A stretch of 64,000 bases of DNA from sequence record OR413575.1; one strand, 5' to 3'. Shown one piece after another: positions 958-62,234 of this stretch (its first letter is position 1; every line of letters starts with the position of its first letter). A model generated the notes under the pieces. The model made no database searches, was not told the DNA's origin, and saw only the letters and a list, made by a program, of their open reading frames with translations. The position numbers and the translations under genes are program-made.

Positions 958-987
958 GGAGGGCTTCGGCTCTCCTATTGTGCTGTC
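958..987 (+). terminator. UUCG hairpin with TTGTGCTGTC tail
   Basis: GGAGGGC-TTCG-GCTCTCC followed by TATTGTGCTGTC; no U-tract. Confidence 0.6.
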
Positions 988-1006
988 TAATAGAGGATTA
1001 TTAATA

Positions 1007-1300
1007 ATGGAAAAATATCTACCCGGTCAAACCGTCGTAACTACCAAATCTATTCACCCCGAAAATATTGGTAAGCTGATGGTACTAGTCCGCCAAATTG
1101 AACCTGAACTGGCTAAACTTATTAAAACTACATCTAACATGGAAGTTGGTGATTTAGGTGATTGCTGGGAGGTAACGCCTTTAGATAAGTTCACTTTATT
1201 CGAACATCAGTCTAAAAGTGAGATCAGTGTTGACGCAGAGAGCCACTCAAATGGATGCACCACTGTCTACATTTTCTCCCATTACTTCAAGGCGGTATAA
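1007..1300 (+). CDS. hypothetical protein, paralog of 660-950
   Basis: GAGG SD before ATG 1007 (preferred over GTG 980); shared N-terminal pattern. Confidence 0.7.
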   Translation: MEKYLPGQTVVTTKSIHPENIGKLMVLVRQIEPELAKLIKTTSNMEVGDLGDCWEVTPLDKFTLFEHQSKSEISVDAESHSNGCTTVYIFSHYFKAV

Positions 1301-1304
1301 CTAA

Positions 1305-1832
1305 ATGACTACGTTGATTTATAAAGACGGTTTCCTTTATGGCGACCGTCGTTACGGAGTACCTGCTAATAATGGTGTTAATATCTACATAGACCACCCT
1401 AAAATCCACACACACGAGTCCAGACAGGTTGCCTTTGGGATTTGTGGTGATACTAAGTTCAAAGGCTCAGAAGGTGTTATAGGCGATGTAGTGCTAGCTA
1501 ACGTTATTCAGATGGCTAAAGGGAACGAAGTGGATTGGCTCCCTTTGTTCAAGAAGTACCTCGGTATGGGCGGTACACTGATCGTCATTACCAAAACAAC
1601 CGGGTACGCGATCTGTATGAATGATGATGAGAGTAGCTACACTCTTGTGGACCTTGATAACATTCCATTCTTTACGGTGGGCAGTGGGCAGAATGCGGCG
1701 GTTGCGTTATTGGCTACTGATACCGATATGGAGAAGGTTTATCCTATCATTGCACGCGTAGACGGAATGACCGGTTACAATCCGGATATTATCAAACGTA
1801 GCCGCTTATTAAAACTGAGGGTTCCTAAATGA
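1305..1832 (+). CDS. Ntn-hydrolase / HslV-proteasome-beta-like peptidase
   Basis: MTT N-terminus (Thr nucleophile), GDRR, PKI and TVGSG motifs in the HslV arrangement. Confidence 0.6.
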   Translation: MTTLIYKDGFLYGDRRYGVPANNGVNIYIDHPKIHTHESRQVAFGICGDTKFKGSEGVIGDVVLANVIQMAKGNEVDWLPLFKKYLGMGGTLIVITKTTGYAICMNDDESSYTLVDLDNIPFFTVGSGQNAAVALLATDTDMEKVYPIIARVDGMTGYNPDIIKRSRLLKLRVPK

Positions 1833-2431
1833 TTTTCATCTTACACGAAGGTAAGTTGTATTATCCTGATAAAGTAGTTAACGCATACGGTCAAGGTACT
1901 GGTGCTGATACGTGGCGTTGTTACAATAACTTCCACTTCTTCGCATTACAAGAAGCAGGTAATGCAGCAACTATTCATTACGCGATGAAAGCCTTCCGTT
2001 CACCAACGATGACTACTTCTAGTGAGCAAGTGGGTATTTATATCGATGTGATGGGCATGATCACTTGTCTCAGTACAAAAGCAAAAATTCATACTCCGGA
2101 AAACAACGGTCATACGGAGATCTTACATACTCCATTGTTGCGCAATATCGATAACCCTATGGATGGCTGGACTATTGTAGCGGCTAACCACCGTCTTTAT
2201 GACATGGCTGCGGCGTTAATGTATAAGGATTCATCTAAACCATACGCGGTTATCTCTAAGGTAATGGAGCTTGATGGTGTTCCCGGTTATAGGAATATTG
2301 TAAGTGTTCCCGTCGACCGAGTTACTAAGATGCTTAAAGAATCTTATATAAGCACCGACGAGCACATCAATGATTCTCAGTGTATGGATCATCAATTCTA
2401 TTTACAGTCTCGTTTAAACGGTAAAAAATAA
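1829..2431 (+). CDS. degenerate Ntn-hydrolase-like paralog lacking the N-terminal Thr
   Basis: ATGA overlap with the previous gene; MIFILHEGKLYYPD parallels MTTLIYKDGFLYGD. Confidence 0.5.
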   Translation: MIFILHEGKLYYPDKVVNAYGQGTGADTWRCYNNFHFFALQEAGNAATIHYAMKAFRSPTMTTSSEQVGIYIDVMGMITCLSTKAKIHTPENNGHTEILHTPLLRNIDNPMDGWTIVAANHRLYDMAAALMYKDSSKPYAVISKVMELDGVPGYRNIVSVPVDRVTKMLKESYISTDEHINDSQCMDHQFYLQSRLNGKK

Positions 2432-2529
2432 AGTCACTTGTATTATCTATGAAGAGTAACGACCTTCAATCGTTGGGGAGTAACGAACCTTAGCGAGCCA
2501 TAATAGATTCCTTATAAGACATTGTCTTG

Positions 2530-2560
2530 GGCACCTTCGGGTGCCTTCTTTTTTTTTGTC
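2530..2560 (+). terminator. intrinsic terminator
   Basis: GGCACC-TTCG-GGTGCC, U-tract, GTC; the same hairpin recurs at 31177. Confidence 0.85.
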
Positions 2561-2618
2561 TGAATCGATATAACAACTATTGCGATGGCATCTTGTGTGA
2601 ATGCATAGGAGTGCTAAA

Positions 2619-3158
2619 ATGATAGAGGCAATGCTGGTAAGTGAAGCTCAGAAATCAGGGGGTGGGGGTATACCTACTACTCCTGAGGAATATTTAGATT
2701 TTATTAATCAAGCGATTTGGTTGATACCTAATGGTGGGAATATCGATAGTGCGGGGAATAGCCCTGGGGATGCTTATACTGTGGGTTACACTAACTATGC
2801 TAATCCTACTGCTACGGCTTTAAACTATGGTAGTCCATGGGGCGATGTGGCGCAGTGGGGTTTTCATGATTATCGATTGCTACAGCACTGTGCTTACGAT
2901 TTAGATACGTTCAGGGATATAGTAGCTAATATCCCGCGTGTTCTTTATTATATTGGGCCTAGACAACCTCGTAATAGTTGGAACAGTGTTACTCACAACG
3001 AATTTAAATCAACCGCGTTTAATGGGTATTCAATGGGGTTTGCTATTCTGGACTTTATATACTGGGATAGTCGTACCGGTAAAATGATGCGTAACAACCC
3101 TAGTCAACGTACTCTACCGCTTGAGTTCGATGGGGTACTGATCAAACCTTTCCGGTAG
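2619..3158 (+). CDS. putative virion/tail-associated protein (MIEAML N-terminus, Gly linker)
   Basis: AGGAG SD before ATG 2619; rich in N/Y/W; N-terminus resembles 23764-24252. Confidence 0.6.
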   Translation: MIEAMLVSEAQKSGGGGIPTTPEEYLDFINQAIWLIPNGGNIDSAGNSPGDAYTVGYTNYANPTATALNYGSPWGDVAQWGFHDYRLLQHCAYDLDTFRDIVANIPRVLYYIGPRQPRNSWNSVTHNEFKSTAFNGYSMGFAILDFIYWDSRTGKMMRNNPSQRTLPLEFDGVLIKPFR

Positions 3159-3190
3159 ATTCCTGTGTAACTTAGCACAGGAGACTACGT

Positions 3191-3850
3191 ATGTTACCAT
3201 TAAATCCCGCTATTCAATTTAAACCCCTTACCGCTGGAACATTCCGTAAGGCTGTGGGTTGTACTGAAGCTATCGCAGAAGCATGGTTCGAAGCCACTAA
3301 TGCTGCTATGGTAGAGTTCGGTATTACCAAACCGCTTGATCAGGCAATGTTCTTGGCACAGGTCGCTCATGAATCAACTGGGTTCACTGCCATGGTCGAA
3401 TCTTTCAACTACAGTAAGCAAGGGTTGAAACTAACCTTTGGACATAGGCTAACTGATGCTGAAATTGATAAATGGGGTCGTCAACCTGGTGAGAAGTCTG
3501 TTCCTATTGAACGGCAACGTCTTATTGCCAACAAGGTTTACGGTAACCGCATGGGTAATGTTCGCCCGGACGATGGCTGGAATTATCGTGGACGCGGTCC
3601 TATACAGACTACTGGTACTAATAATTATATTGCTACTGGTGATGCTCTGGGTGTGGATCTTTATACTACCCCTGACCTCATCACCAGTCCCGATGTAGGT
3701 ATTCGTTCTGCAGCTTATTTCTATGTGAGCGCAGGTTGTCTGAAGTATACTGACGATATCGTTCGTGTAACCAAACTCATCAATGGTGGGGATAATGGGT
3801 TAGATGATCGTAAGAAACGTTACGCGCTGGCTAAATCTGTGTTAGCATGA
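3191..3850 (+). CDS. glycoside hydrolase family 19 endolysin
   Basis: FLAQVAHESTGF, YRGRGPIQTTG..NY and VTKLINGG.NGLDDR motifs. Confidence 0.9.
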   Translation: MLPLNPAIQFKPLTAGTFRKAVGCTEAIAEAWFEATNAAMVEFGITKPLDQAMFLAQVAHESTGFTAMVESFNYSKQGLKLTFGHRLTDAEIDKWGRQPGEKSVPIERQRLIANKVYGNRMGNVRPDDGWNYRGRGPIQTTGTNNYIATGDALGVDLYTTPDLITSPDVGIRSAAYFYVSAGCLKYTDDIVRVTKLINGGDNGLDDRKKRYALAKSVLA

Positions 3851-3885
3851 TTAATAACGAGCTCACTGTTTCAAGATGACTCCGC

Positions 3886-3916
3886 TGGGACCTTCGGGTC
3901 CCACTTTTTTTTTGAC
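3886..3916 (+). terminator. intrinsic terminator
   Basis: TGGGACC-TTCG-GGTCCCA, T9, GAC. Confidence 0.85.
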
Positions 3917-3968
3917 TCTTGCTCCGATTAGTATGTAAACCATACATTACTTATTGACTGAGGTTATT

Positions 3969-4652
3969 ATGCAATACATTCTCTCTATGCGTCAAGGTAA
4001 CGCTTCTACTGCTGAATTTCAAACTTTCGTAGCTTCTATATTTGCAGCTGCGGCATGTCAAAAGATTCAACCGCTACATGAAGCACTTATCGCGATTGAT
4101 ACTCTGAATAAAAACATTCGCTGGGGATTACAAGAGCGCAACTCAAGCGATCTTACTATCTCTAACCAAGCGCGGCCTGTTGGTGAAGAACTACAATTCA
4201 TTATCAATATCGACTATCAGCCGTACGAACTCATTTTCGCGATGCCCGAATTCGCGGCGGGTACTAACCGTCAAATCATCGGCCACGTATTGTGTATCGA
4301 AGACGATTATCGTTTGTATAAACCGTTTGACCCGCGTATCATGCGCCGTGCCAAAGGTAGTCTTAACCGTATTTGGGGATTAGACCTCTATGCGGGTAAA
4401 GATGACCGTGGCGTCAGTATTAAACCTTTCCTTGAACGAGATACTAATGCACATGTCGAATCTCATGATCTCCAACCTTCAGTCGAAGTGCACTCAATGC
4501 ATGGGGCTGGGTACTCTATCCTCATTCACCAGCTGGTTGCTAAGGTTCGTAAGGCGCATCCTGATTATGCACTTAGTGATCTGGTCCGCGTTACTGTCGG
4601 TAATAATCCGGTACTGGTAGAAGTAGATTCTACTCACACCGAAGAAGGGTAA
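3969..4652 (+). CDS. hypothetical protein, probably late
   Basis: Preceded by ATTAGTATG; GAGG SD before ATG 3969. Confidence 0.7.
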   Translation: MQYILSMRQGNASTAEFQTFVASIFAAAACQKIQPLHEALIAIDTLNKNIRWGLQERNSSDLTISNQARPVGEELQFIINIDYQPYELIFAMPEFAAGTNRQIIGHVLCIEDDYRLYKPFDPRIMRRAKGSLNRIWGLDLYAGKDDRGVSIKPFLERDTNAHVESHDLQPSVEVHSMHGAGYSILIHQLVAKVRKAHPDYALSDLVRVTVGNNPVLVEVDSTHTEEG

Positions 4653-4697
4653 GACAACATAAACCCCCTGGCCATTTGGCCAGGGGGAATGTGCCGC
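4653..4697. terminator. bidirectional hairpin terminator without U-tracts
   Basis: CCCCCTGGCC-ATTT-GGCCAGGGGG; tails TTTATGTTGTC on - and AATGTGCCGC on +; lies between convergent genes. Confidence 0.7.
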
Positions 4698-5561
4698 TTA
4701 TGCAGACTTTTTGGCGCTGTTCATGTTCGGAACGTAGCCAGTGTAGTCGACCGCGTTAACGTCAGCTTCTGCTTTCTGAATCCAAGCAGAGCGGAAGTTA
4801 GGATCGATACCGGTTTGGTTCGCTGCGTCTAAGAAACGCTGAGCCAGTTTACGTACGCCAACACCAACCTGCTGAATACAGGTAAAGGTGATAGAGTGCG
4901 TTACTGATTCCGGAGTAGCAGTGATGTCACGACTACCTTCTACACGAGGACCTTGCATCGGCATCATGTTGGTGCAGAGCCAGGCTTCTACAACCCAACG
5001 TTCAGTCGGATCGGGTTCTACGAACAGTACAGTGAACGCCGTGTAGTCAGGATACAAACCGTAAGGAGTGTTACGACCACGGCTAACAACTGCCGGTACG
5101 TTGGTTTCCGGGTTACCCAGGAGGTTAAGGATATAACCGTTCCAGAAGTATTTAACCGGGGTACCGATTTTCTCAACCCATTCGAATTGAGGTTGGCTAC
5201 GGTTACGACGAACCTTAGCCAGAGTCTGCATCATCTCACCGCCGCCGCCGAACGGGTTCTCGGAGTATTCAACTTCCAGAGACTGGTCCAGGCCAGAGAT
5301 CGAGCGCGGGTGTAGTTCGATAAGTGCTTTGAGGCACGCAAGCCATTTTTCAGGGTTCGGTAGATCTTTGAATCCGGCCGGACCTTCCATCAGGAATGCG
5401 ATTACCGGGCGACGGGTGTAGTCAGCTGCACCGTGGTAGTAACGGATGTCAGTAACGTAACCCATCTGTCCAGAGTTGGTAAGGTCCGTTACCGGACCGT
5501 CGATACCCTCAGCGTACGCCTCATTCTGCTTGAGGATCGTGTTGGCGTCTTTCTTTGCCAT
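4698..5561 (-). CDS. tail tube protein (phiKZ gp30-like)
   Basis: 287 aa, directly downstream of the sheath; FTVLFVEPDPT..VVEAWLCTNMMP motif typical of these tubes. Confidence 0.8.
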   Translation of the reverse strand: MAKKDANTILKQNEAYAEGIDGPVTDLTNSGQMGYVTDIRYYHGAADYTRRPVIAFLMEGPAGFKDLPNPEKWLACLKALIELHPRSISGLDQSLEVEYSENPFGGGGEMMQTLAKVRRNRSQPQFEWVEKIGTPVKYFWNGYILNLLGNPETNVPAVVSRGRNTPYGLYPDYTAFTVLFVEPDPTERWVVEAWLCTNMMPMQGPRVEGSRDITATPESVTHSITFTCIQQVGVGVRKLAQRFLDAANQTGIDPNFRSAWIQKAEADVNAVDYTGYVPNMNSAKKSA

Positions 5562-5572
5562 GATAATTCCCC

Positions 5573-7657: not shown

Positions 7658-7693
7658 TATCTCCAACTAATTAGTTTAGGTCAAGACCACGTA

Positions 7694-7715
7694 GTATGTA
7701 CATACCTAGTCATAC
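7694..7715. promoter_or_regulatory. divergent TATG late-type start sites
   Basis: Palindrome GTATGTACATAC plus a second minus-strand ATTAGTATG; TATG is the known phiKZ late consensus. Confidence 0.55.
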
Positions 7716-7755
7716 TAATCGAACTCTCATTCATTGCAATAACGGAGTAACACCA

Positions 7756-8667: not shown

Positions 8668-8678
8668 AGGTATAAACC

Positions 8679-15112: not shown

Positions 15113-15129
15113 TCTAACTTGTTCTTAAA

Positions 15130-15148
15130 TATATATTACTAGAGTGAA
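15130..15148 (+). promoter_or_regulatory. early-type phage promoter
   Basis: TATATATTAC-TAG-AGTGAA; contains the phiKZ early consensus TATATTAC. Confidence 0.75.
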
Positions 15149-15196
15149 GAGGCATTCGCTTCTTCATTCTTTTATTTTGCCATAAGGTTAATAGAC

Positions 15197-15955
15197 ATGA
15201 ATATTAAAGGTTTCCCTTTCGACTCATTTACTCCTGCTACTAATAAGTTAATGCTGGATTTAGGTATTGAACAAACGCTGATCGATTTTGCCTCTGCTAA
15301 CATTGAACGTAACGATGTAGCACATCGCCATGATCATGTTGAAGATGTAATACTGAAAGTCTTCGATTATTACGATGCTCTCTATGGTATAGCTAATACG
15401 CCGTTAGTAGTTAATGAGAAACGTCGGGCAGTTGCAGCGGCGTTATTACATGACATCGGTTGCTGGATGGATCGCGATGCTCACCACCTGATTGCATCTA
15501 ATTGGGTATTGTCATTGCGTGAAGATCAATTCAGTCAAATGTTCTACGGTATTAATCCTGACGACATTTCTGTGGTCGCAGTAGCTATCTTAGAGCATCG
15601 GGCCAGTTGGAAGTTTGCACGTAAATCAGCAGTAAGTGATATTGTTGCAGCTGCGGATCGTGGTTCCTTCTGTCCGAAGGAATATCTTCGCCGTGCTTAC
15701 TTATACGGGCGTAGTAAGTTAAAGATGCGCGGTAGTGAAGCTCTGACAAGAGCTGTAGATCATTTCATGGAAAAGTATAAAGATGGGGGATATGTATACG
15801 AAGCGATGCCTGAAATCTGTAAGCAATTCAACCAAGCCAGTATTGCGCAGATTAAAGCTGCTGCTAACAATCGTGCGTGGTGTGAAGATACTATCGCAGA
15901 TAACATGTTAGAGTGGGAAGTGACTTATGAGGAGATGACTAATGCAAGTAGCTAA
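15197..15955 (+). CDS. HD-domain phosphohydrolase
   Basis: H..H, LLHDIG, EHR and AADR motifs in order. Confidence 0.85.
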   Translation: MNIKGFPFDSFTPATNKLMLDLGIEQTLIDFASANIERNDVAHRHDHVEDVILKVFDYYDALYGIANTPLVVNEKRRAVAAALLHDIGCWMDRDAHHLIASNWVLSLREDQFSQMFYGINPDDISVVAVAILEHRASWKFARKSAVSDIVAAADRGSFCPKEYLRRAYLYGRSKLKMRGSEALTRAVDHFMEKYKDGGYVYEAMPEICKQFNQASIAQIKAAANNRAWCEDTIADNMLEWEVTYEEMTNASS

Positions 15956-16454
15956 TTTAAAGAGTAGGACGCATTCTCCTACTCGTGCTATGCCGGTACG
16001 TATCGCTAGTACGTTAGCATTTATTGAGAGCTATCGTAAATCGCGAGCGGCCGAATCTAATTTTGAACTAAAACGGGAGAACATACATGCTCATGAGTTT
16101 GCTTATTTGATCACAGATCTGCCATCTGGTAAATTCTTTGTATACGGTATCGTAAGTAAAAGGAATCCTGATAACACAGGTGTGTTAACGGAAGAAGATT
16201 TAACTGAAATTAAAGCATTGATTCCTGATGATCAGGAGTATGTTGATATCGTTCGCGGGTTCGACTTTGAAGCGGATGAAGACAACAGTGAAATAACTGT
16301 TTACCTGGGTGCTGAATGGGTATTTGCAATACTGGTGGACGAAGAGTTAGGATGTTACACGATTGAACGCAACGAATACCTGGATCGCTCTTCAGATATT
16401 TATACATTAATCAAGACTGCTGGCAAAGCATTCAGAATAGCAAGAGGCTACTGA
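15942..16454 (+). CDS. hypothetical acidic protein
   Basis: GAGGAG SD; overlaps the end of the HD gene. Confidence 0.7.
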   Translation: MQVANLKSRTHSPTRAMPVRIASTLAFIESYRKSRAAESNFELKRENIHAHEFAYLITDLPSGKFFVYGIVSKRNPDNTGVLTEEDLTEIKALIPDDQEYVDIVRGFDFEADEDNSEITVYLGAEWVFAILVDEELGCYTIERNEYLDRSSDIYTLIKTAGKAFRIARGY

Positions 16455-16527
16455 CAGCATAGCCCCCGGACCCGTTAAGGTCCGGGGGCTTAGCCAGGGG
16501 TATCTTATCCCTTATTTTTTTTTTGAC
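16453..16527. terminator. bidirectional terminator
   Basis: GCCCCCGGACC-CGTTAA-GGTCCGGGGGC; T10 then GAC downstream on +; TATGCTGTC tail on -. Confidence 0.75.
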
Positions 16528-16697: not shown

Positions 16698-16740
16698 AGT
16701 ATAGTAATGTTACCTAATTTTTTACGCGTTTTCATTCTGA

Positions 16741-16774
16741 CAAAAAAAAAAGGAGTGGGCGCGACCCCACTCCT
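16741..16774 (-). terminator. intrinsic terminator
   Basis: GGAGTGGG-loop-CCCACTCC, T10 and GTC on the minus strand. Confidence 0.85.
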
Positions 16775-18877: not shown

Positions 18878-18880
18878 CGG

Positions 18881-18908: not shown

Positions 18909-18998
18909 GATGTTTAACTCTTCTACTTGTGTTGGGCACCGGAACGTAGTTCCGTTGTGCTGTAATTGTGACTATGCATTAACTGAGGATATTGAAAT

Positions 18999-20492
18999 AT
19001 GATTAATTTAGTATTAGAGATTACACGTAGACCCGAAAATATCAACAAAGAAATTCGCGTAATGGGAGTAAACATTCCGTTACAAGAACTTTACGTAATT
19101 GGGAATAATAACAACAGGGCGATGATTAGTTGTAAATTTCATCGTAGTCATTTAGGCCGTGTCCTGGAATTGATTAAACAGAATGAGGCTATCATTTCAC
19201 TGGACAAGGAAGACATCGGTATGCGTGATGTATACGATGGCCATATTCTTCCGCAAGATGGCGAGGGGATGCGATTAAGTGAAATCACTAGCGCATTGGA
19301 TGGATACGAAGATCTGATGAAATGGGTAAATCGTTATCAGAGACGCGAGATTCAGGATATTGTTGAGTATACTTGGATCAACGACCAGTGTTCCTCTTTA
19401 TCTGAACACCTGAAGAAAGTAGATTTAGATCTCCCTAACTCCGGTGTAGCTGTAACTATTCAACGGCCAGCAGCTGAAGAAATAGAAAAGGTTTATGCTG
19501 ATATGGAGCCCGCACCTAAGAAGCCGGTGATGGATACATCACGATTCAGGATTGAAACTCCAGCTTTTATTAAGCGTATGTTAAGACAGGATGCTAAAGA
19601 ATCAAGGATCAAAAAGAACCTTGTGTCCGCTGCATTACGAGGGACTATAAGTACTTTCCGTGGAACATCTTTGTACGAGAAGTACAAAATGATGTTAGAG
19701 AACGGAATCCAGGCTGGGATTGTATCCTCTATGGACGCGTTTGAACTTGACTATCATATCGATATACTAATCGCTAATCCGAAATACTCGGTGCCGTGTG
19801 CGGTTAAAGGTAGAAAAGTCAAGCGTATTGAGGATGTATTTGTCCTTGACTCTTTAGAGATGGAGAAAACCGATCTTGGTTCGTGTCCTGGTGTTGTGTT
19901 ACCTGAGCATTGCGGTATTTATAATCCTACCATGGATCATTCCAATACTAAGAAGTTACCGGTTGGATTAGGGAATGGGCTCTTGTACAAGTGCGACGTG
20001 CAGTTAGGTGATGTTTCTCAGTTAGCCGTAGAAGAGCCTGTAAAGAACACAGAGCCGTTTACAGTTGTCGTGTACGACACTTGGTTTAGTGGATCTACGG
20101 AGCGTCTACAGATGATCGCTGACGGTATACGGACACGATTGGTTAAAGGTGACGGTTTTCTCTATACTAGCTCGGAAGATCCAAAAAATGCTAAGTCTCT
20201 TGACCCATCACTCATCGCCGGAAAGATGACTAATTTTCGTGTAATGAAAGATATTACAGGAAATGGTATTATTACTGCGACGCTGACTCTTCTCGATACA
20301 CCGTATGGTATTAATCTACGGACTATGATGGAGAACGGTACAAGAGTTGACTTTACGCCTGTTTGGTATTGGAAACTAAAAGACGGTGTTCAAACTGTTG
20401 AAGATGTTTATTACATCAAATACGGTCTTGAGCTACGTAACCGCATGGCGATTGATGAGTTCTGTAAGAAAGAAGGATTAATCATATCGTAA
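18999..20492 (+). CDS. 497-aa protein with a C-terminal, apparently inactive prohead-protease-like domain
   Basis: ITATLTLLDTPYGINLRTMMENG resembles the T4-gp21-type KILDTPMGKI..LL..G segment; catalytic His and Ser positions substituted. Confidence 0.5.
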   Translation: MINLVLEITRRPENINKEIRVMGVNIPLQELYVIGNNNNRAMISCKFHRSHLGRVLELIKQNEAIISLDKEDIGMRDVYDGHILPQDGEGMRLSEITSALDGYEDLMKWVNRYQRREIQDIVEYTWINDQCSSLSEHLKKVDLDLPNSGVAVTIQRPAAEEIEKVYADMEPAPKKPVMDTSRFRIETPAFIKRMLRQDAKESRIKKNLVSAALRGTISTFRGTSLYEKYKMMLENGIQAGIVSSMDAFELDYHIDILIANPKYSVPCAVKGRKVKRIEDVFVLDSLEMEKTDLGSCPGVVLPEHCGIYNPTMDHSNTKKLPVGLGNGLLYKCDVQLGDVSQLAVEEPVKNTEPFTVVVYDTWFSGSTERLQMIADGIRTRLVKGDGFLYTSSEDPKNAKSLDPSLIAGKMTNFRVMKDITGNGIITATLTLLDTPYGINLRTMMENGTRVDFTPVWYWKLKDGVQTVEDVYYIKYGLELRNRMAIDEFCKKEGLIIS

Positions 20493-32358: not shown

Positions 32359-32793
32359 ATGGAACTTCATCTGGTAATTATCGACGGTCGCTTCGATCGC
32401 ATCGATTTATCCAGGGATGGAGTCCTTCTGTTTACGATTACAAGATACCAATCCAGAGGATTAGGTTTAGTTGCTTGTGTCAACGGTAGATTAGAATATC
32501 TTTATATCTACCGCCATAAAGCCGCTGTGCGTCAGGAAGTAAGATTCCGTTATGGCTTGGACGTCATATCCTCTCAGTTACGTAAACAAGGAAAGGAATT
32601 CAAAGGACTGTTCTGGGGCTCCCCAGTAGCGACAGATTATTTAAATGATCGCTGGTTCGGAGTAGGTAATACATTGTTAATGAGTCGTAATGGTAGATTA
32701 TCAGATCCATTGGAAAATGTACTGGTACGCAACCGATATTACGATATCGACACTGAACCATTGTTACAACATATTCGTACTTGGTTACAGTGA
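32359..32793 (+). CDS. hypothetical protein
   Basis: 144-aa ORF ending at a terminator. Confidence 0.65.
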   Translation: MELHLVIIDGRFDRIDLSRDGVLLFTITRYQSRGLGLVACVNGRLEYLYIYRHKAAVRQEVRFRYGLDVISSQLRKQGKEFKGLFWGSPVATDYLNDRWFGVGNTLLMSRNGRLSDPLENVLVRNRYYDIDTEPLLQHIRTWLQ

Positions 32794-32838
32794 CAGCACA
32801 AAAGCCTCCCCCGAAGGGAGGCTTCTTTTTTTTTTGTC
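32792..32838. terminator. bidirectional terminator
   Basis: AAGCCTCCC-loop-GGGAGGCTT; U-tract and GTC on +; TTTTGTGCTGTC on -. Confidence 0.85.
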
Positions 32839-34826: not shown

Positions 34827-35076
34827 TATGAGCGAATATCACCGCCATTGTTGCTAGCTCACTACAATCTGAAACCTAAATCACTCTCTTAAGTGAGAGT
34901 TAATGGAACACTGGTTTAAATGTACCAGAGGACGAAAAGCCTCTGTGGGAAAGGCAGCGATGATCGCAGCAGAAGAACCACAAGCGAATGGTAGTCTAGC
35001 TTAGCAAGAAAGGGTTGCTCCCTGATCAGCAAGCGTACCCCGGCCCCGGACTCCGTGGGCTGGGCATTATGCTGTC
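34827..35076 (+). ncRNA. candidate structured RNA downstream of phuZ
   Basis: TATG at 34827; long-range closing helix with several internal hairpins; terminal hairpin plus ATTATGCTGTC. Confidence 0.4.
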
Positions 35077-35104
35077 ACATCCTCAGAAGTAAAAATATTA
35101 CGAG

Positions 35105-37302: not shown

Positions 37303-37648
37303 ACCCGTTCACATTGTCCCGCTAGATTGGATAGTTACCTGGTTTATTACCGCGATACAACGGCTGGATGAGGATGCAGCCTACGCGGTTAATGAAAAAG
37401 ATGCCATTAGAATAATGATAGCCGATGCAATGCGTATTGATGAACCATGGGTGGAACGTAAGTATATGGAAATCATTAATCAATACGAAGGGTTTGGGAT
37501 TGACAGTGCTGTAATAATGAAGATCCTAAACCGGGGGGTAGAAAAATTAGAGCGTCGGCTTGATAATGCTGGGGTCCGTTGTGGGCCCCGGTATTCTTTT
37601 GACTGGTATCATGGATCCAGAAACTTATACATTTACGAGGGGATGTGA
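37277..37648 (+). CDS. array protein 6, start uncertain
   Basis: Shared array architecture. Confidence 0.65.
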   Translation: MTRNISQREPVHIVPLDWIVTWFITAIQRLDEDAAYAVNEKDAIRIMIADAMRIDEPWVERKYMEIINQYEGFGIDSAVIMKILNRGVEKLERRLDNAGVRCGPRYSFDWYHGSRNLYIYEGM

Positions 37649-39965: not shown

Positions 39966-39974
39966 TTCATGTCA

Positions 39975-40010
39975 TAAAGGAGGGCTCGAGCCCTCCTTTA
40001 TTTTTTTGTC
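39975..40010 (+). terminator. intrinsic terminator
   Basis: TAAAGGAGGGC-TCGA-GCCCTCCTTTA, T7, GTC. Confidence 0.85.
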
Positions 40011-45626: not shown

Positions 45627-45657
45627 AAGGGAGCTTCGGCTCCCTTTCTTTTTTGTC
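45627..45657 (+). terminator. intrinsic terminator
   Basis: AAGGGAGC-TTCG-GCTCCCTT, U-tract, GTC. Confidence 0.85.
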
Positions 45658-53705: not shown

Positions 53706-53722
53706 TCTAAATAACATTAAGA

Positions 53723-53741: not shown

Positions 53742-53774
53742 GAAGTTAATTAATTAATTAAGAGGAATTACCAA

Positions 53775-55259: not shown

Positions 55260-55274
55260 TAAGGCACATTTCCA

Positions 55275-56630
55275 ATGGCTAAAGAAATTGATAAGTTTTA
55301 CGACGAAATCCGTCAGAGCATGGGTTTCGGTAAAGACGACCATGAAGGTTGGACGATTGAAATGCCTGGGGGATCCGTCCCCCTTACCCTTAAAGGTAAA
55401 CAGATGGTCACGCCTACGCGTGAAGTTCTGAAAGCAGCTGAGTGGGATAAATATCAACCTTTCCACCCGCTGTGCGAAAACATTCGTCGTCGTAAGTCTC
55501 TGGTACTCAGTCGTTTACAGACTTACGGGACGGCTCGTCTTCGGACTGTACTGGTTGACATCATTAACAAGATGCTTGAAATTGCATCAGATTCAGATAG
55601 CCACGATAAGTTGACTATCGACCAGCGTGAGATTTTGAAGTTGTTCGCTACCATGTCTTCCAAGACAGTTAAGAACATCACCAATCTCCTCACCAAAGTC
55701 GTAGCGGCACAGCCGGGTGAATCTGAACTGATCGCAATGGGCGTACGTCGCAGTGGTACGTGGAAAGGCGAAGACTACGATCGCCTGGCAACGGTTAACT
55801 TCCCAATCATGGATGAAGAACATGTGGAAGGTGGTAAGGTGTTCGGTGTAGCAGTAACTGTACGGGATAAGGAAATCCTGTATAAAGTACTGCGTTTCAT
55901 CCTGCCGAAGATCGATGAGCCGGAAGCATATAGCTACGGCACACGTTCTGAGATTGCGCCACAGTTTCATTGTCTGATGATGTCTTTCCACGCGGTAGCG
56001 GTTGACCTTAACCGTGTAACCAAGTTGATTGGCGGAATCGACAAAGAATTCTTCAAGCGTAATCATATCCTGACTACCTGGTCGGCACAGATGCCTAACC
56101 TGTATGATTATAAGGACATGATCCCTACGCTGGATGGAAACGATGGAGAGCCTAACAAGGATGAGGTTGAAAAAGAACGTGCAGCTCAAGATGCTCGCGA
56201 TCGCCGTAAAGGTGTAGTGAAAGAAGAGCCACGTGAGAAAATCAACCCGTTCAAACGTGAACCTCGTAAGGACGATCGTCGCGATGACCGTGATCGTGAT
56301 CGCCGCCGCGATGATGATCGAGACGACCGCCGTCGTAGCTTCCGTGATGAAGACGATGATCGTCGTAGTCGCCGAGACGATCGGGATGATCGTCGCCGTT
56401 CGTTCCGTGACGACGACCGTCGTGGACGTAGTCGTTATGATGACGATGATGATTACTACGAAGATCGTGGTAGTCGCCGTCGTAGCTTCCGCGACGATGA
56501 TCGTCGGGATAACCGCGATGAAAATGGCATTACTATTAACCGTAGAAATGACCGTGGCCGTGACCGTTACGATGATCGTTATGATCGTCGAGATGACCGT
56601 CGTGGATCACGTCGTCGTTCATTCCGTTAA
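55275..56630 (+). CDS. core protein (phiKZ gp70 position) with about 120-aa Arg/Asp low-complexity tail
   Basis: FHPLCE and YSYG..S..AP.F motifs; RRRSFR occurs four times in the tail. Confidence 0.65.
   Translation: MAKEIDKFYDEIRQSMGFGKDDHEGWTIEMPGGSVPLTLKGKQMVTPTREVLKAAEWDKYQPFHPLCENIRRRKSLVLSRLQTYGTARLRTVLVDIINKMLEIASDSDSHDKLTIDQREILKLFATMSSKTVKNITNLLTKVVAAQPGESELIAMGVRRSGTWKGEDYDRLATVNFPIMDEEHVEGGKVFGVAVTVRDKEILYKVLRFILPKIDEPEAYSYGTRSEIAPQFHCLMMSFHAVAVDLNRVTKLIGGIDKEFFKRNHILTTWSAQMPNLYDYKDMIPTLDGNDGEPNKDEVEKERAAQDARDRRKGVVKEEPREKINPFKREPRKDDRRDDRDRDRRRDDDRDDRRRSFRDEDDDRRSRRDDRDDRRRSFRDDDRRGRSRYDDDDDYYEDRGSRRRSFRDDDRRDNRDENGITINRRNDRGRDRYDDRYDRRDDRRGSRRRSFR
56266..56630 (+). repeat. imperfect coding repeats (CGT/GAT-rich) encoding RD/RRRSFR units
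   Basis: CGTCGTAGCTTCCG at 56331 and 56481, with variants at about 56391 and 56612. Confidence 0.8.
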
Positions 56631-56645
56631 TAGATGATAAAGATT

Positions 56646-56677
56646 AGGGGCCTTCGGGCTCCTTTTCTTTTTTGTCT
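56646..56677 (+). terminator. intrinsic terminator
   Basis: GGGGCC-TTCG-GGCTCC, U-tract, GTC. Confidence 0.75.
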
Positions 56678-56686
56678 GGGGGACAT

Positions 56687-57190
56687 ATGCGTAAAACACT
56701 ATTAAGTTCAATCTACGATGCATTCAGTGACTACGGTTATACCGATGAAGAGATTGATGAAGTAATGCATGAACTACTTGTCAAGGACGAAATAGAAGCG
56801 GATTTAGAACACGGATGTTGTTTACCGGCGTTGACTGCGCAATGGATGCAGATTAAGAAGTATCAGTACATGCGTGATGAATTCAACTTTGAACTTATCC
56901 GTCAGGGCGATGTAGGGGAATGGGCAAGCATCATTAAGCTCATGGTATTGGACTGTACAACTAAGGAAGCACAACGTTGGGCAGAACAATCTATCCGTTA
57001 TGTAATATCACCGGCTTATTGGCGCGATACTAAGATTATGTACGGAGTATCTTATTACCTTAACAAAGCAGCTATTAATAGCATGATACCTTTCGATGTA
57101 ATTGCTGAAGCAGTAACTGCTGGTTATAATACTCACTATGGCCGTGACTTCGATAATCTGAAAGAAGAGATAAGGAAATATGTGGAATGA
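56687..57190 (+). CDS. hypothetical acidic helical protein
   Basis: GGGGGA SD before ATG 56687. Confidence 0.65.
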   Translation: MRKTLLSSIYDAFSDYGYTDEEIDEVMHELLVKDEIEADLEHGCCLPALTAQWMQIKKYQYMRDEFNFELIRQGDVGEWASIIKLMVLDCTTKEAQRWAEQSIRYVISPAYWRDTKIMYGVSYYLNKAAINSMIPFDVIAEAVTAGYNTHYGRDFDNLKEEIRKYVE

Positions 57191-57582
57191 ATGCTGAAAG
57201 TAATACAATTGTACACCGTTTACGTGAACTTGATTTAGACGGTATCGAAGACATCGTTCTGTATATTACTCAGGACATATCTGACGAATCGATGGAAACC
57301 ATCATTAACAAACATTTTGTTAACCACATGGTCATGATCATCGGTAACCAACTAAAAGAAGACGGTTTGCAATTCACTAGTGAAGTGATGTCTAATCTTT
57401 CTGATGATTTCACTGCAGCTTGTGTAGCACGCTGGATGGACGATGTCGGACGCGAAGATGCTGATTCCGGAATGGTTACATTCGAAGAAGGTCGGAGAGT
57501 CATGCTCGAATATCATGACAAGCAGTTACGTTACCGTGCAGTGGTTAAGGATGCACTTGGCCGTAAACGCAATCTACAGTGA
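57187..57582 (+). CDS. hypothetical acidic protein
   Basis: ATGA overlap. Confidence 0.65.
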   Translation: MNAESNTIVHRLRELDLDGIEDIVLYITQDISDESMETIINKHFVNHMVMIIGNQLKEDGLQFTSEVMSNLSDDFTAACVARWMDDVGREDADSGMVTFEEGRRVMLEYHDKQLRYRAVVKDALGRKRNLQ

Positions 57583-57625
57583 CAGCACAAGAGAAGGGAC
57601 ATATGTCCCTTCTCTCTTTTTTGAC
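57581..57625. terminator. bidirectional terminator
   Basis: AGAGAAGGGAC-ATAT-GTCCCTTCTCT; U-tract and GAC on +; TTGTGCTGTC on -. Confidence 0.85.
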
Positions 57626-57646
57626 GCGTAGGAGATATACTTTGTA

Positions 57647-57988
57647 TTACGGCAGCGATGCCAAAAACGCGCTATGCAAGTCATCTATCAATTTTAGTCT
57701 GGGGTAGATAATAACATCGTATTTGCTATCGAATTGAGTAGGTGAGGTCATTCCGTTGGCACGCATGATGATGTACCAATATTTACGTTCAGGCGTAATT
57801 TCTTCACGTATAAAGGAATGAAAGTTGTGTTTGTGGTGTTCATGCATAATCGGGTCAACTGTTAATGCTTCAATGTTGTTGACTCGAAGAATGTTAGGTA
57901 AGTTATCCTCAACAGTTGCGATCCACAAAGGATTATACCAGCTAGCACCGCCTGGCTGGTTCATGAGTTCTTTCATCGGCATAATCAA
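57647..57988 (-). CDS. small protein with LysM-like / T4 gp53-like motif
   Basis: YWYIIMRANGMTSP resembles the gp53-type YW.I...N....P motif. Confidence 0.45.
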   Translation of the reverse strand: MIMPMKELMNQPGGASWYNPLWIATVEDNLPNILRVNNIEALTVDPIMHEHHKHNFHSFIREEITPERKYWYIIMRANGMTSPTQFDSKYDVIIYPRLKLIDDLHSAFLASLP

Positions 57989-58001
57989 AAGATCCTATAA
58001 G

Positions 58002-58020
58002 TATATATTACCTAAGTGTA
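58002..58020 (+). promoter_or_regulatory. early-type phage promoter
   Basis: TATATATTAC-CTA-AGTGTA. Confidence 0.7.
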
Positions 58021-58052
58021 ATAGTTAATCGTTAATTAAAAGGAGTTCCTTT

Positions 58053-60170
58053 ATGGCACTAAAGCGAGCGTTACCAAATGACCGTCAGATAACTCCTCAG
58101 CTAGCAGGATTATCTACAAACATGGTTTCAATGTCTCCAGGCGTATCTGCTTCGCGTGGTCAGATGGAAGGTGGTCAGGCTGCTCAAACGTTAGTGTTAA
58201 ATAACCCAGACTATCCACGTACGTACACCTGCGTGGAACAGGAAATGGCAAAATATACTTTTGCTAGTCGTGCCCGGTTTAACTGTGAAGTTATAGCTGT
58301 TATCGACAAGTTCCGTACAGGGTTATCGCGAGATGCTTTTTTGACCAACCCGTACTCGTTAGCGATCGTACGCGATTTAACGCGCCGCGGAAATCACTTC
58401 GATGTAATTGAAATCCCGACGTACTTCTCGCATCATAACAACTTCGGTTATATGGGTGTTCCTCAACCGGCTCTTAAGAAAATCAGGCACCGCCCATGCC
58501 ACTTAGAAAAAGGTGAGACGTTATACGACTCCCCAGGTAATGGTCCAGAAGGTTTCTATCGTCGTGGATTATTATCCAAAGTGGCGTTCTTAACCTCGCC
58601 TTATGTAACCGAGGATGGTTACTGGGCAAGTAACGAATGGTGCGAACGGGCGACTGCAACTGGCATTGGAGAAATCTTCATCACGGTTCCGAAAGGGCAT
58701 TATCTCTTACCTATTAACGGTACAAAAGACAATCCGAAATTCATCCCTTCACTGGGTGAAAAGATTCGTCCTGACGGCATGGTGTTATGTACTCGTGAAG
58801 CAGATCCAATCCTGGAGCTGTTCCAGCTTACCGATAAAGGGTCAAAAGAAGTGGACCTGACATTCGATGAGCCGAAGTACATTGAAGGCAGTTGCCGTAA
58901 TGCAACTGTCATCGACATTGAAGTGTATTTAAACGAACAAGAGTTCTTAAATACTCAGCCGTGTATGTTGGATGATGATGGTAACGAAATCCCGAACCAG
59001 ATTGTACAGATCTGGAATGAACATAAACGTTACTATGGAGATATCATCAAAGTAGCAGAAGAGATTGAACGTGAGTGCGGAAAAACTCGCCCGGCGCAGT
59101 TTGAGAATCTCTTGTGTCAGGAGATTTATAAAGCTCAACACGTAGTCGGTTACAAGAATGCGAAACCTATTCGTTTCATGAATCACAGTCAAGCTATTCC
59201 GACTGCTACTATTCGTATTAAGTATAAATACGATATCATCCCTGAGATCGGTTCTAAGATTGCCGGGGACTTCGGTGATAAAGGTGTGTTATGTCGTAAG
59301 ACCCCAGCTAGTTGGATGCCTAAAGATAAACACGGGTTCGTTTGCGATCTCGTAGTACACGCCAACGCGACTATCAACCGAATGATCTCTGTACGTTTGG
59401 ATGATCAGTATTTGGGAGCTCAATGTCTGTTGAAGGAAAAACGGGTCAAAGAGCTTTGGGAAGATGATAAATGGGAAGAAGCATTCGAGGTATTAGCTGA
59501 GTTCTATTCCGTAGCGACACCACGTGCTTATAAGGATAAGTTCCTGCCGTTCATGGTAACTAAGGAACGTCGTTATAATCATGTTAAATCCGTTGTGAAC
59601 GGGCATATCATGCTGGAACTCAAGCAAAACGATACGCCGAACTTCATTGATCTTACTGAAGCATTAGAAGATCGCTGGCCGTATGATAAAGGACCAGTTA
59701 CATTCCTGAATACTCACGGGTTACCTCGTAAGTCTAAGGGAGATGTAATCATCGGTACATCCTACATTCGTGTACTGGAGAAAACCGGGCATGATTGGGG
59801 TGCTGTGGATAGCCCTGCTCGTCAGGCTCATGGTATCGCAGCGAAGGTTACTCACCGTGACCGTCATGCACGTCCATATCGTAAGCAACCGTATCGTTAT
59901 GGCGAATCAGAACTCCGTCCAATCGTAGCACTTTGCGGCGAAGACTGGGCAGCTGATATCATGGATCGTTCTAATAACCCGAAAGCCTCCGAAGAGATTT
60001 TCCGCAATATCATGGAACATGAAACTCCGTCCAACATGGAAGAAGTAATTGACCGTAATAAAGTACCAGTAGGTAGTTCAGTAACGCACCAATATTTGCG
60101 CAACGCGTTATATACTTCTGGTTCTGAATTTGAGCGTACTGATATCGGTAAGAAAACCGGAGATAAATAA
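58053..60170 (+). CDS. non-virion RNA polymerase beta-like subunit, C-terminal part (phiKZ gp71/73-like), uninterrupted
   Basis: SASRGQM..GQ, TEDG and IGSKIAGDFGDKG (GDK...GNKG equivalent) motifs. Confidence 0.88.
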   Translation: MALKRALPNDRQITPQLAGLSTNMVSMSPGVSASRGQMEGGQAAQTLVLNNPDYPRTYTCVEQEMAKYTFASRARFNCEVIAVIDKFRTGLSRDAFLTNPYSLAIVRDLTRRGNHFDVIEIPTYFSHHNNFGYMGVPQPALKKIRHRPCHLEKGETLYDSPGNGPEGFYRRGLLSKVAFLTSPYVTEDGYWASNEWCERATATGIGEIFITVPKGHYLLPINGTKDNPKFIPSLGEKIRPDGMVLCTREADPILELFQLTDKGSKEVDLTFDEPKYIEGSCRNATVIDIEVYLNEQEFLNTQPCMLDDDGNEIPNQIVQIWNEHKRYYGDIIKVAEEIERECGKTRPAQFENLLCQEIYKAQHVVGYKNAKPIRFMNHSQAIPTATIRIKYKYDIIPEIGSKIAGDFGDKGVLCRKTPASWMPKDKHGFVCDLVVHANATINRMISVRLDDQYLGAQCLLKEKRVKELWEDDKWEEAFEVLAEFYSVATPRAYKDKFLPFMVTKERRYNHVKSVVNGHIMLELKQNDTPNFIDLTEALEDRWPYDKGPVTFLNTHGLPRKSKGDVIIGTSYIRVLEKTGHDWGAVDSPARQAHGIAAKVTHRDRHARPYRKQPYRYGESELRPIVALCGEDWAADIMDRSNNPKASEEIFRNIMEHETPSNMEEVIDRNKVPVGSSVTHQYLRNALYTSGSEFERTDIGKKTGDK

Positions 60171-62195
60171 GTGGAAAAAGTTTACGCCCGTGAGCTATTA
60201 CATTGGGACACTCGCGACCTTTTAACCAATGAAGATAATCTGGAGCCAATACTCGTAGAGTTCGATGATGAAGTAATTGAAACTACGTGGCAAGAAACAA
60301 TTGTGTCTCGGCTGTTCTGGAAGTTCCATATCGAATATCCGGATACTCCGTTGAATGCACATAGCCATGTTCAAGGAGAGTTCTTGTCTCCTGGACTACA
60401 GAAGAAGCTGTTAGAGCGAGGGAAAGCAGATGTTCGCGAAGCGTATCCGGAAGTAGACGATGAGGATCTTAACCTCATCGCTTACCAGATAACGAATGAT
60501 TGCCATAACATGGCAGTGGGCGATCTGGAAGAATATACTGGTACAATGGATGCACTAGCATTCTTACAGATCAAAAAAGATGCCGAGATTCAGAAGATCC
60601 GTGAGGAGATTTATGAAGATCCGTCTAAGCGTACCGTTAACAAGGTCTATCGTAATATCCGTTCTATACTGATGTACGAACCACGTTACCGGAACAACCC
60701 AATCGCGATCTCGTTGAATCAAGGAACGATTAAACAGGGTCAGTTACTCCAGATCATCGGGTTCCGTGGATTCTGCTCAGAGATCAACCAAAAGATCTTT
60801 AAGCACATTATCCCGGTTGGGTTTATGGAAGGATTGACAAGACTGTCTTTCTACGGAATGGAGTCACGTTCAGCATCTACAGCTATGTTATCAACGGATG
60901 ATCCGGTTAAGACCACTGAGTATTATAACCGTGAGCTGCAATTACTGAACTACGGAGTTACGGAGATTGACTTCGAGGATTGCGGTAGTGATGAAACCAT
61001 GCCATGGAAAGTAACTGATTCCGACCTGGATGAAATGTTACCTGGTAAATTCTACGTTAAAGGGAAAGAGTTGATCATGATACGGAAACGTGATCGACAT
61101 CTGGTGGGTAAAACAATTGAGCTTCGCGTACCGGCTTATTGTCATCACCCTGACGACGGGGTTATTTGTAAATACTGTCTTGGCGAAGTAGCTGAGTCTT
61201 TCCAGCGGAACGGGAACGCTCAATATCAAGCAACCGTAAGTCAGAACGAAACTGTATCTCAGCAAACGATATCCGTTAAACACTTACTGATGTCAGCTGA
61301 ATCAGATTCGTACCATATCGATCCATACTACGCAGTGTATTTTGATAACTCGGCGAATGATAAGGAAATCATACTGGCGTCGGATATCTGGCAGAAGCAC
61401 GATGTTAAGTTGATCTTCAACCGCTATGATATTCATCGCCTGGCTGACATCAACCAAGCAGAGCGTTTAGATCAGGAAGATACCAGTTCCTTCTCCAAGT
61501 TAAGAACTGTCACGCTCTCATATCGGGATTCCAAAAACAAAGACCCAGTTACTCAACCGGTACCACTGAACCATGGATCTTATACTCCGTTCTTAACGAA
61601 GGAGTTCCTGAAGTATATCAGTGATTACGGGCATGAAGAAGCTAATGGTGAGATCATTGTTAGTTTAGCTAACTGGCCGGATGGTGAAGTCATCTTCCGT
61701 TTACCTGAACGTCGTAGTTCGGTACTGGAAGCAGCAGTTGCATTGAAGAAGGAAATCTTTGCGATTGGCGATAGTGGTCGAGACGGGAAAGCTCGATTAG
61801 CTATGGACTTACGTGATCCCATGTTGTTGTCTAAAGCAATCCGTGATATTGCAGAACTAACCAACTCACGATTCAAGGTATCGCTACCGATCATTGAGTT
61901 AGTTATGTTGGCGATGATGGGACGTGATCCTGATAATGGCGATTATCGGATGCCGCGTAAAGGAACGGGCGCTAGATTCGCTACACAACGCGCTATAATG
62001 AACGGACGTAGTCTATCAGGTAAGATGGCGTATGAGCGACAATATGAAGCTGGAGTGGATCCTGCGAGTTATTTGGATATACCTCGCGGTGATCATCCGT
62101 TCGACGAGTTCCTGGTACCTATAGGAAACCGGAGCAACCAGTGGCGCGAACGTCCTAAAGGAACATATTACGGACGAGTTGTAAGGAAGTCATAA
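60171..62195 (+). CDS. non-virion RNA polymerase beta-prime-like subunit, C-terminal part (phiKZ gp74-like)
   Basis: QIIGFRG, GFMEGL, ESRSA and the Zn site C..P...IC..C.G. Confidence 0.88.
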   Translation: MEKVYARELLHWDTRDLLTNEDNLEPILVEFDDEVIETTWQETIVSRLFWKFHIEYPDTPLNAHSHVQGEFLSPGLQKKLLERGKADVREAYPEVDDEDLNLIAYQITNDCHNMAVGDLEEYTGTMDALAFLQIKKDAEIQKIREEIYEDPSKRTVNKVYRNIRSILMYEPRYRNNPIAISLNQGTIKQGQLLQIIGFRGFCSEINQKIFKHIIPVGFMEGLTRLSFYGMESRSASTAMLSTDDPVKTTEYYNRELQLLNYGVTEIDFEDCGSDETMPWKVTDSDLDEMLPGKFYVKGKELIMIRKRDRHLVGKTIELRVPAYCHHPDDGVICKYCLGEVAESFQRNGNAQYQATVSQNETVSQQTISVKHLLMSAESDSYHIDPYYAVYFDNSANDKEIILASDIWQKHDVKLIFNRYDIHRLADINQAERLDQEDTSSFSKLRTVTLSYRDSKNKDPVTQPVPLNHGSYTPFLTKEFLKYISDYGHEEANGEIIVSLANWPDGEVIFRLPERRSSVLEAAVALKKEIFAIGDSGRDGKARLAMDLRDPMLLSKAIRDIAELTNSRFKVSLPIIELVMLAMMGRDPDNGDYRMPRKGTGARFATQRAIMNGRSLSGKMAYERQYEAGVDPASYLDIPRGDHPFDEFLVPIGNRSNQWRERPKGTYYGRVVRKS

Positions 62196-62203
62196 TCAGT
62201 ACG

Positions 62204-62234
62204 CCCTCTCCTTAGGGAGAGGGTTTATGACTGC
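62204..62234 (+). terminator. hairpin with TTTATGACTGC tail
   Basis: CCCTCTCC-TTAG-GGAGAGGG; no U-tract. Confidence 0.6.

Follow-up and report, generated by a model that had tools for sequence, protein, structure and literature searches.

The genomes of chimalliviruses are transcribed, without the host polymerase, by two unusual multisubunit RNA polymerases (RNAPs), and to our knowledge the way in which these enzymes stop is essentially unstudied. We analyzed a stretch of 64 kb (the window) that comprises bases 146198–210197, i.e., the final 64 kb, of the 210,197 bp genome of Salmonella phage SPLA10 (OR413575.1). The annotation of SPLA10 includes a nuclear shell protein (chimallin), the tubulin PhuZ and several split RNAP beta-type subunits, which identifies the phage as a chimallivirus with both a virion (vRNAP) and a non-virion (nvRNAP) multisubunit polymerase. 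Its closest relative in the phage collection was Serratia phage PCH45 (chimallin identity 52%), and a scan of IMG/VR revealed no relatives closer than PCH45. Our subject is an element found repeatedly at gene ends in SPLA10, a strong hairpin followed by a short conserved tail, (Y)T(G/A)TGCTGT(C/T). Based on comparisons of DNA sequence, this element is probably the SPLA10 version of a conserved chimallivirus terminator motif, acting as the stop for units transcribed by the nvRNAP. Positions below are those of the window unless given as genome positions, and genome-wide counts refer to SPLA10 as assembled from the public record, the last 64 kb of which are identical to the window.

A first-pass annotation of the window, made from its letters alone, had described eight hairpins with such tails. 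All eight were located on the strands described, with stems that fold stably, and we found one more site, at 18940–18965 on the plus strand. At every site a GC-rich stem-loop of 6–14 pairs, with a folding energy between -13 and -34 kcal/mol, lies directly 5' of the tail. The search of Rfam gave no family match within the window. The sites are as follows:

957–987, plus strand: motif-class terminator, stem 957–976, tail ATTGTGCTGTC, -13.5 kcal/mol
4653–4687, minus strand: motif-class (variant) terminator of the tail-sheath operon, stem 4664–4687, tail TTTATGTTGTC, -29 kcal/mol
4664–4697, plus strand: the 4664 hairpin read on the plus strand, variant tail AATGTGCCGC
16452–16490, minus strand: motif-class hairpin, stem 16461–16490, tail ATGCTGTCA, -33.7 kcal/mol
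18940–18965, plus strand: additional motif-class site, stem 18940–18954 CGGAACGTAGTTCCG, tail TTGTGCTGTAA
32791–32824, minus strand: motif side of a bidirectional terminator, stem 32802–32824, tail TTGTGCTGTCA
35039–35076, plus strand: motif-class site with an imperfect stem, tail ATTATGCTGTC, -27.5 kcal/mol
57580–57615, minus strand: motif side of a bidirectional terminator, stem 57590–57615, tail TGTGCTGTCA
62203–62234, plus strand: hairpin followed by TTATGACTGC, ambiguous between a variant tail and a TATG-type promoter 65 nucleotides (nt) 5' of the helicase start codon

The 4664 junction thus carries the motif on both strands. The plus-strand site at 957 lies within an early unit, 25 nt 5' of the next start codon, that at 18940–18965 is ~40 nt beyond a U-tract terminator at 18879, and that at 35039–35076 is followed by a separate early promoter at 35101.

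The bare heptamer TGCTGTC was not enriched in the window (8 copies, 6.5 expected), with five of the eight copies directly after hairpins. When placement was taken into account, by counting RTGCTGT beginning no more than 6 nt after an intergenic hairpin, there were 5 copies in the window where 0.08 would be expected by chance (p = 2e-8) and 17 genome-wide where 0.20 would be (p = 4e-27). Since those 17 copies are carried by 15 different stems, they do not represent one cassette that has been copied. All intergenic copies of the extended motif are preceded by T, and all except that at 37506 have a hairpin 5' of them (imperfect at 35069). Alignment of the SPLA10 tails gave the consensus Y-T-(G>A)-T-G-C-T-G-T-(C/T)-(A), in which the final A belongs in part to a stop codon, that of the gene on the other strand.

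Some SPLA10 terminators are duplicated or homogenised within the genome. Three pairs of duplicated hairpins were observed, the members of each pair being at different convergent junctions (L003:3598-3623 with L003:13711-13736, L003:20118-20144 with L004:9722-9748, and L004:23050-23075 with L004:26615-26640).

A test of orientation was required, as at convergent junctions a motif that is 3' of one gene is nonetheless 5' of the hairpin of the opposing gene. Genome-wide, the motif was present on 26 of 84 hairpin strands in the terminator orientation and on 3 of 66 in the antisense orientation. Among minus-strand hairpins of SPLA10, it was found at 11 of the 18 that have a minus-strand gene ending just upstream and at 3 of the 57 that do not (p = 2e-6), and the same test gave 16/28 versus 11/92 in Pseudomonas phage ϕKZ and 7/23 versus 2/44 in PCH45. 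These counts indicate that the motif belongs to the gene whose sense strand has it 3' of the hairpin, as the U-tract does. The motif is thus in sense with the genes that it follows, and many of its copies are at convergent junctions. The first-pass annotation had proposed that bidirectional sites often use a U-tract on one strand and the GCTGTC tail on the other. This holds, with the U-tract on the plus strand and the motif on the minus strand, at 6 of 16 convergent junctions, whereas at 5 the motif is present on both strands; the converse arrangement (plus motif, minus U-tract) was observed at none.

The tails are closely fitted between the genes. The minus-strand tails at 16452–16490, 32791–32824 and 57580–57615 end in TCA, the reverse complement of the stop codons of the plus-strand genes at 15942–16454, 32359–32793 and 57187–57582, respectively. 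More generally, the opposing gene has a stop codon that either overlaps the last TCA or TTA of the tail or adjoins the GTC that follows a U-tract, so that coding sequence is kept out of the element and starts again right at its boundary. Gene ends of zero spacing, in which TGA or TAA is the reverse complement of TCA or TTA, occur in the window at 16452–16454, 32791–32793 and 57580–57582, and in the genome at 59759, 81780 and 121287.

The second class of terminators in SPLA10 has a U-tract after the hairpin. Ten of these in the window had been described as ending in GTC or GAC, and each of the ten was confirmed:

2529–2560, plus strand: U-tract terminator ending T9-GTC
3886–3916, plus strand: U-tract terminator ending T9-GAC
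16496–16527, plus strand: U-tract terminator ending T10-GAC
16739–16774, minus strand: U-tract terminator ending T10-GTC
32802–32838, plus strand: U-tract side of the 32802 bidirectional terminator, T10-GTC, with the stop codon of the minus-strand gene adjoining the GTC
39974–40010, plus strand: U-tract terminator, T-run then GTC, end of the early unit begun at 35101
45627–45657, plus strand: U-tract terminator, T6-GTC, end of the early chimallin unit
56646–56677, plus strand: U-tract terminator, T6-GTC, end of an early unit
57590–57625, plus strand: U-tract side of the 57590 bidirectional terminator, T6-GAC
63869–63902, plus strand: U-tract terminator, T10-GTC, beyond the helicase gene

Throughout the SPLA10 genome, G follows the terminator T-run in 32 of 38 cases compared to 77 of 265 other T-runs (p = 8e-11), and GTC or GAC follows in 13 of 38 compared to 11 of 265 (p = 2e-7). 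PCH45 has the same preference for G (34/44 after terminator T-runs, 92/311 elsewhere), mostly as GCT. As a control for the host polymerase, 50 kb each of Escherichia coli K-12 and phage T4 contained five terminator T-runs and one, respectively, which are too few for the G preference to be compared. The conserved G is at a similar distance from the stem in both SPLA10 classes, with a median of 7 nt in the motif class and 9 nt in the U-tract class. In one location the two classes stand in tandem, as on the minus strand between 16452 and 16774 a U-tract terminator (16739–16774) comes first and a motif-type terminator (16452–16490) second, the two being separated by ~260 nt that contain no annotated gene.

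Early units were recognized by an early-promoter-like element, TATATATTACnTnAGTGAA, which resembles the ϕKZ early promoter TATATTAC. There are ~19 copies in the SPLA10 genome and all are on the plus strand, in agreement with reports in the literature that early ϕKZ genes are confined to one strand. The copies are located 5' of chimallin, of nvRNAP subunit genes and of arrays of small genes, and in the window they are as follows:

15126, 18197, 20569, 24624, 35101, 43482, 52090, 53719 and 57998, plus strand: starts of 26-nt matches to the early-promoter-like element

In the interval 15126–15182 (plus strand), no more than ~15 nt separate the early promoter from a 13-bp hairpin whose tail is rich in U, located before the gene at 15197, and a similar promoter and hairpin pair is present at L005:37361-37475. 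The hairpin could act as a promoter-proximal attenuator, or the early transcript made here could be very short.

Sorting of terminators by the type of unit that they end revealed a marked difference between the classes. In SPLA10, the first terminator encountered downstream of early promoters was of the U-tract class in 14 cases and the motif class in 2, whereas for minus-strand terminators the ratio of U-tract to motif was 1:11 (p = 5e-5). The corresponding ratios were 12:7 and 0:16 in ϕKZ (p = 6e-5) and 10:1 and 5:7 in PCH45 (p = 0.03). When the analysis was restricted to the plus strand of SPLA10, early units (14:2) still differed from non-early units (13:13; p = 0.02); the latter ratio bears out the remark in the first-pass annotation that the split between classes is imperfect. 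By eye, most plus-strand motif terminators close units that start at a TATG-type site. We found no description of a split of tail class by unit type in the literature searched (open-access papers and preprints), and it is possibly new.

The motif itself is not new, as it has already been published for ϕKZ and for phage 201ϕ2-1. Using ONT-cappable-seq, Putzeys et al. (2024, microLife) mapped 133 termination regions in ϕKZ, of which 61 had a conserved motif composed of a stem-loop and a "TTAT region", 5'-BCCYCCCCHWWDGGGRRGGBYTTATKYYGT-3' (PMC10914365). In 201ϕ2-1, a motif at 59 terminators ("motif A") "strongly resembles" that of ϕKZ, and eight selected terminators were functional in a reporter assay in uninfected cells (PMC11512511). 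Comparison of SPLA10 tails with the 3' end of the ϕKZ consensus, YTTATKYYGT, showed that TTATGCTGT is an exact fit and that the commoner TTGTGCTGT differs at one base (A to G); that is, TATG copies match exactly and TGTG copies have one mismatch.

The tail was also recognizable in other giant phages. A scan of the ϕKZ genome recovered tails TTATGCTGTTA, TTATGCCGT and TTATGTTGT, PCH45 has T[GA]TGCTGTC and T5-GCTGTY, and Erwinia phage RAY has T[AG]TGCCGT as well as T(n)GTC. SPLA10 and PCH45 junctions were compared after pairing by gene order (~52% protein identity). At syntenic junctions, including those of the head protease, the baseplate and a PhuZ-adjacent pair, the stems are unrelated and the minus-strand tail is usually still of the motif type (e.g., TTGTGCTGTCA in SPLA10 and GTTTGTGCTGTCA in PCH45), and at some junctions motif and U-tract have been swapped. 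That the tail is kept while the stems differ, together with these swaps, suggests that selection acts on the tail and that the two classes are equivalent as terminators.

In the first-pass annotation the tail had been interpreted as a signal for stopping or processing that is sequence-specific and is recognized by one of the phage RNAPs or by a phage factor. A published motif at mapped 3' ends, its sense orientation, and the sorting of classes in three phages support this interpretation. The motif, its enrichment, its orientation, its class split and its conservation in three or four phages were observed here, and the mapping of RNA 3' ends to it in ϕKZ comes from the literature; we infer that pausing or release would occur at the tail in a sequence-specific manner and with one polymerase only. 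The element would mark the 3' ends of transcripts made by the phage's own multisubunit RNAPs. A U-tract followed by G (often GTC) would end nearly all early units, those of the injected vRNAP, and about half of the non-early plus-strand units, and the TRTGYYGT tail would end units with no early promoter, i.e., essentially all of those on the minus strand and the remaining half of the non-early plus-strand units. The strand bias might arise because the vRNAP acts on the plus strand alone, so that "universal" terminators would be needed only there. Both tails place a step from U to G ~7–9 nt past the stem, where intrinsic terminators usually release the transcript.

How the tail might act is suggested by two ideas. 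Under the first, the tail would cause pausing in a sequence-specific manner. TGTG matches the consensus for elemental pausing by bacterial RNAP, T-3 G-2 Y-1 G+1, and we consider this as a lead only. Under the second, the nvRNAP, which retains its promoter-recognition parts as integral subunits, may re-bind TRTG, a sequence like that of its promoter, in the non-template strand and stall just past the hairpin. Re-binding is weakened by the finding that TGTG is commoner than TATG in SPLA10 and PCH45. We tentatively hypothesize that there are two polymerase-specific stop codes, though the odds are against it: the U-tract with G might stop both polymerases, and TRTGYYGT might be read only by the nvRNAP, via the pocket of the beta-lobe that reads TATG, with the vRNAP reading through. 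U-tract terminators would then insulate the early programme on the plus strand, and the integral sigma-like and beta-like parts would remain during elongation and produce a promoter-like pause. Two such codes, if real, would explain the absence of the motif at the ends of early units, its dominance on the minus strand, and the core that it has in common with the late promoter.

Several observations weigh against the tail as a conserved stop for nvRNAP units. The tail was weak or absent in samples of SPN3US and Vibrio phage Aphrodite1 (42 kb each), in which tails were mostly U-rich, and was weak in phage EL, which indicates that the motif is widespread and perhaps not universal. The split by unit type is one-sided, as non-early plus-strand units are evenly divided, and three hairpins of the motif or TATG type lie within early units (957, genome 89845 and 62203). 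The polymerase that transcribes a unit was judged through proxies only, namely the strand of the unit and whether it has an early promoter. The UUGUGCUGU tail is expected to give a fairly stable RNA:DNA hybrid, unlike the textbook weak-hybrid mechanism, and release through a weak hybrid alone is therefore unlikely; another mechanism, or a factor, would be needed. Lastly, the mapping of 3' ends in ϕKZ does not separate termination from processing (PMC10914365).

The last point bears on the possibility that the tail is an RNA processing site, at which a host or phage ribonuclease cuts past a protective hairpin and the conserved bases are recognized by the nuclease. Sequencing of 3' ends is unable to distinguish termination from cleavage, a tail with no U-tract makes a poor canonical intrinsic terminator, and both SPLA10 and ϕKZ encode a ribonuclease. 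We nevertheless consider processing unlikely. The motif is kept among phages that infect Pseudomonas, Serratia, Erwinia and Salmonella, and conservation across such hosts favors a phage-encoded reader. The class split tracks promoter class and strand, which suits a signal for a polymerase and is unexpected for a nuclease exposed to all phage RNA, and the U-tract class has the same G or GTC at the same distance from the stem. In addition, terminators of 201ϕ2-1, taken irrespective of tail type, blocked reporter expression in uninfected cells (PMC11512511).

Somewhat less probable still is that the tail is a TATG-type nvRNAP promoter placed next to a terminator hairpin, with the G of TRTG being the transcription start as in ϕKZ late promoters. 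The ϕKZ nvRNAP initiates at 5'-TATG-3', with G at +1, and the four bases are read in the non-template strand by a beta-like subunit (PMC4666361, PMC12809450). TATG or TGTG is present within the tail, and at 957 and genome 112189 the G is 24–25 nt 5' of the next start codon, a spacing like that of putative TATGTA promoters. There are also hairpin-adjacent TATGAC or TATGTT sequences, at 62225, genome 30982 and genome 55905, that are 45–65 nt before start codons. However, at no fewer than 11 convergent junctions the tail faces the 3' end of the opposing gene and has no gene to serve, and several co-directional motif sites precede an early or TATGTA promoter of their own. TGTG is present in 16 of 23 tails, while single substitutions in TATG nearly abolish initiation by the ϕKZ nvRNAP (PMC4666361). 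C follows TGTG in 19 of 21 tails but in only 5 of 43 free intergenic TGTG sequences. The ϕKZ model promoter P119L, which reads TATGTAGAC, has no upstream hairpin, whereas intergenic copies of the extended motif all follow hairpins, save 37506. Overall, the tails do not combine a TATG core with a same-strand gene at promoter distance.

Free intergenic TATG sequences in SPLA10 are of a different kind. T is favored as the next base (TATGTAA, TATGTCGAC; TATGT(A/C)), and most of these sequences are 19–67 nt before start codons. Examples in the window, 9–69 nt before start codons, are as follows:

3932, 18973, 24283 and 33733, plus strand: TATGT(A/C)-type sites
43353 and 16897, minus strand: TATGT(A/C)-type sites

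Judged by this context, the free sites look like the real set of nvRNAP promoters in SPLA10, distinct from the tail. The few hairpin-adjacent TATGAC or TATGTT sites, including that at 62224, may be true promoters that abut a terminator, and a dual role may exist at some co-directional sites. In the region 62203–62295 a hairpin lies between the nvRNAP beta' and helicase genes and is followed by TTATGAC. This site had been listed as a variant tail (TTTATGACTGC); the hairpin and tail are present, and a TATG-type promoter for the helicase gene looks to be at least as good a fit.

It is very improbable that the tail has no function, being a degenerate U-tract or part of copied terminator cassettes. 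Hairpins are duplicated with their flanks (those at genome 3598 and 13711 are identical, and those at 20118 and 59722 and at 73050 and 76615 are near-identical), but the same tail is found on 15 distinct stems and again in ϕKZ, PCH45 and RAY despite unrelated stems, and invariant T-R-T-G-C-T-G-T positions are not expected from the decay of a U-run. A DNA-level signal, such as a site of nicking, priming or packaging, would be suggested by a conserved short word beside a palindrome and by GTC in both classes, but it is scarcely credible given that orientation tracks gene direction, that the element is at gene ends with stop codons adjoining, and that RNA 3' ends map to the homologous ϕKZ motif (PMC10914365). 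On the grounds given above, the readings of the tail as purely a promoter, as an artefact of repeated cassettes and as a signal in the DNA itself were rejected.

These analyses indicate that the ϕKZ terminator tail is conserved in enterobacterial relatives and that it is sorted by unit class in three phages. To the published motif they add an enterobacterial TGTG variant, the G or GTC rule after U-tracts, and a reproducible association between tail class and unit class. Conservation and sorting together provide a concrete, cheap hypothesis on termination by the nvRNAP and vRNAP. They also help in annotating operon ends in jumbo phages for therapy and engineering, since standard terminator finders overlook the motif class because it has no U-tract.

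Compared with known systems, both SPLA10 classes are like canonical intrinsic terminators in having a GC-rich hairpin and a presumed release 7–9 nt past the stem, and the U-tract class is canonical in form. It differs in the base after the run, which is G in 84% of cases and often begins GTC. The motif class differs further in having no U-run (the longest is 2 U) and in a tail whose sequence is itself conserved. Tails such as UUGUGCUGUC fall short of ~5 or more U in the 8 nt after the stem, and a consensus terminator scan skips them, with the exception of 4687–4664, which has UUUAUGUUGU.

The class II termination signal of T7 RNAP, ATCTGTT, is sequence-specific and hairpin-independent and is used by a single-subunit enzyme. 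It is alike in that a phage polymerase has a second, sequence-specific stop beside the hairpin with U-tract, and a CTGT core is common to both. It is unlike the SPLA10 motif in acting without a hairpin and on a single-subunit polymerase, whereas here the polymerases are multisubunit and intergenic copies follow a hairpin except at 37506; action independent of a hairpin is thus not a property of the SPLA10 tails.

With the ϕKZ nvRNAP late promoter the tails have in common a four-base T-R-T-G core, which in the promoter is read in single-stranded non-template DNA by the beta-like subunit (PMC4666361, PMC12809450). This manner of reading might allow the nvRNAP to sense the tail while it elongates. 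That promoter has neither an upstream hairpin nor conserved downstream bases, whereas the tails continue CTGT(C/T).

The closest likeness is to the ϕKZ termination motif, in that both have a GC-rich stem-loop and then YT(T)RTGYYGT, are at gene ends, and are often bidirectional between convergent genes; one tail, TTATGCTGTTA, is identical letter for letter in the two phages. They differ in the purine of TRTG (TGTG 16 and TATG 7 in SPLA10, TATG 29 and TGTG 0 in ϕKZ, and TGTG 6 and TATG 2 in PCH45) and in the stem arms, where the purine/pyrimidine polarity of SPLA10 is opposite to that of ϕKZ. The published ϕKZ consensus pools tails with TTATG and those with TTATT (K = G/T), without the sorting by promoter class or strand that was done here for ϕKZ, PCH45 and SPLA10.

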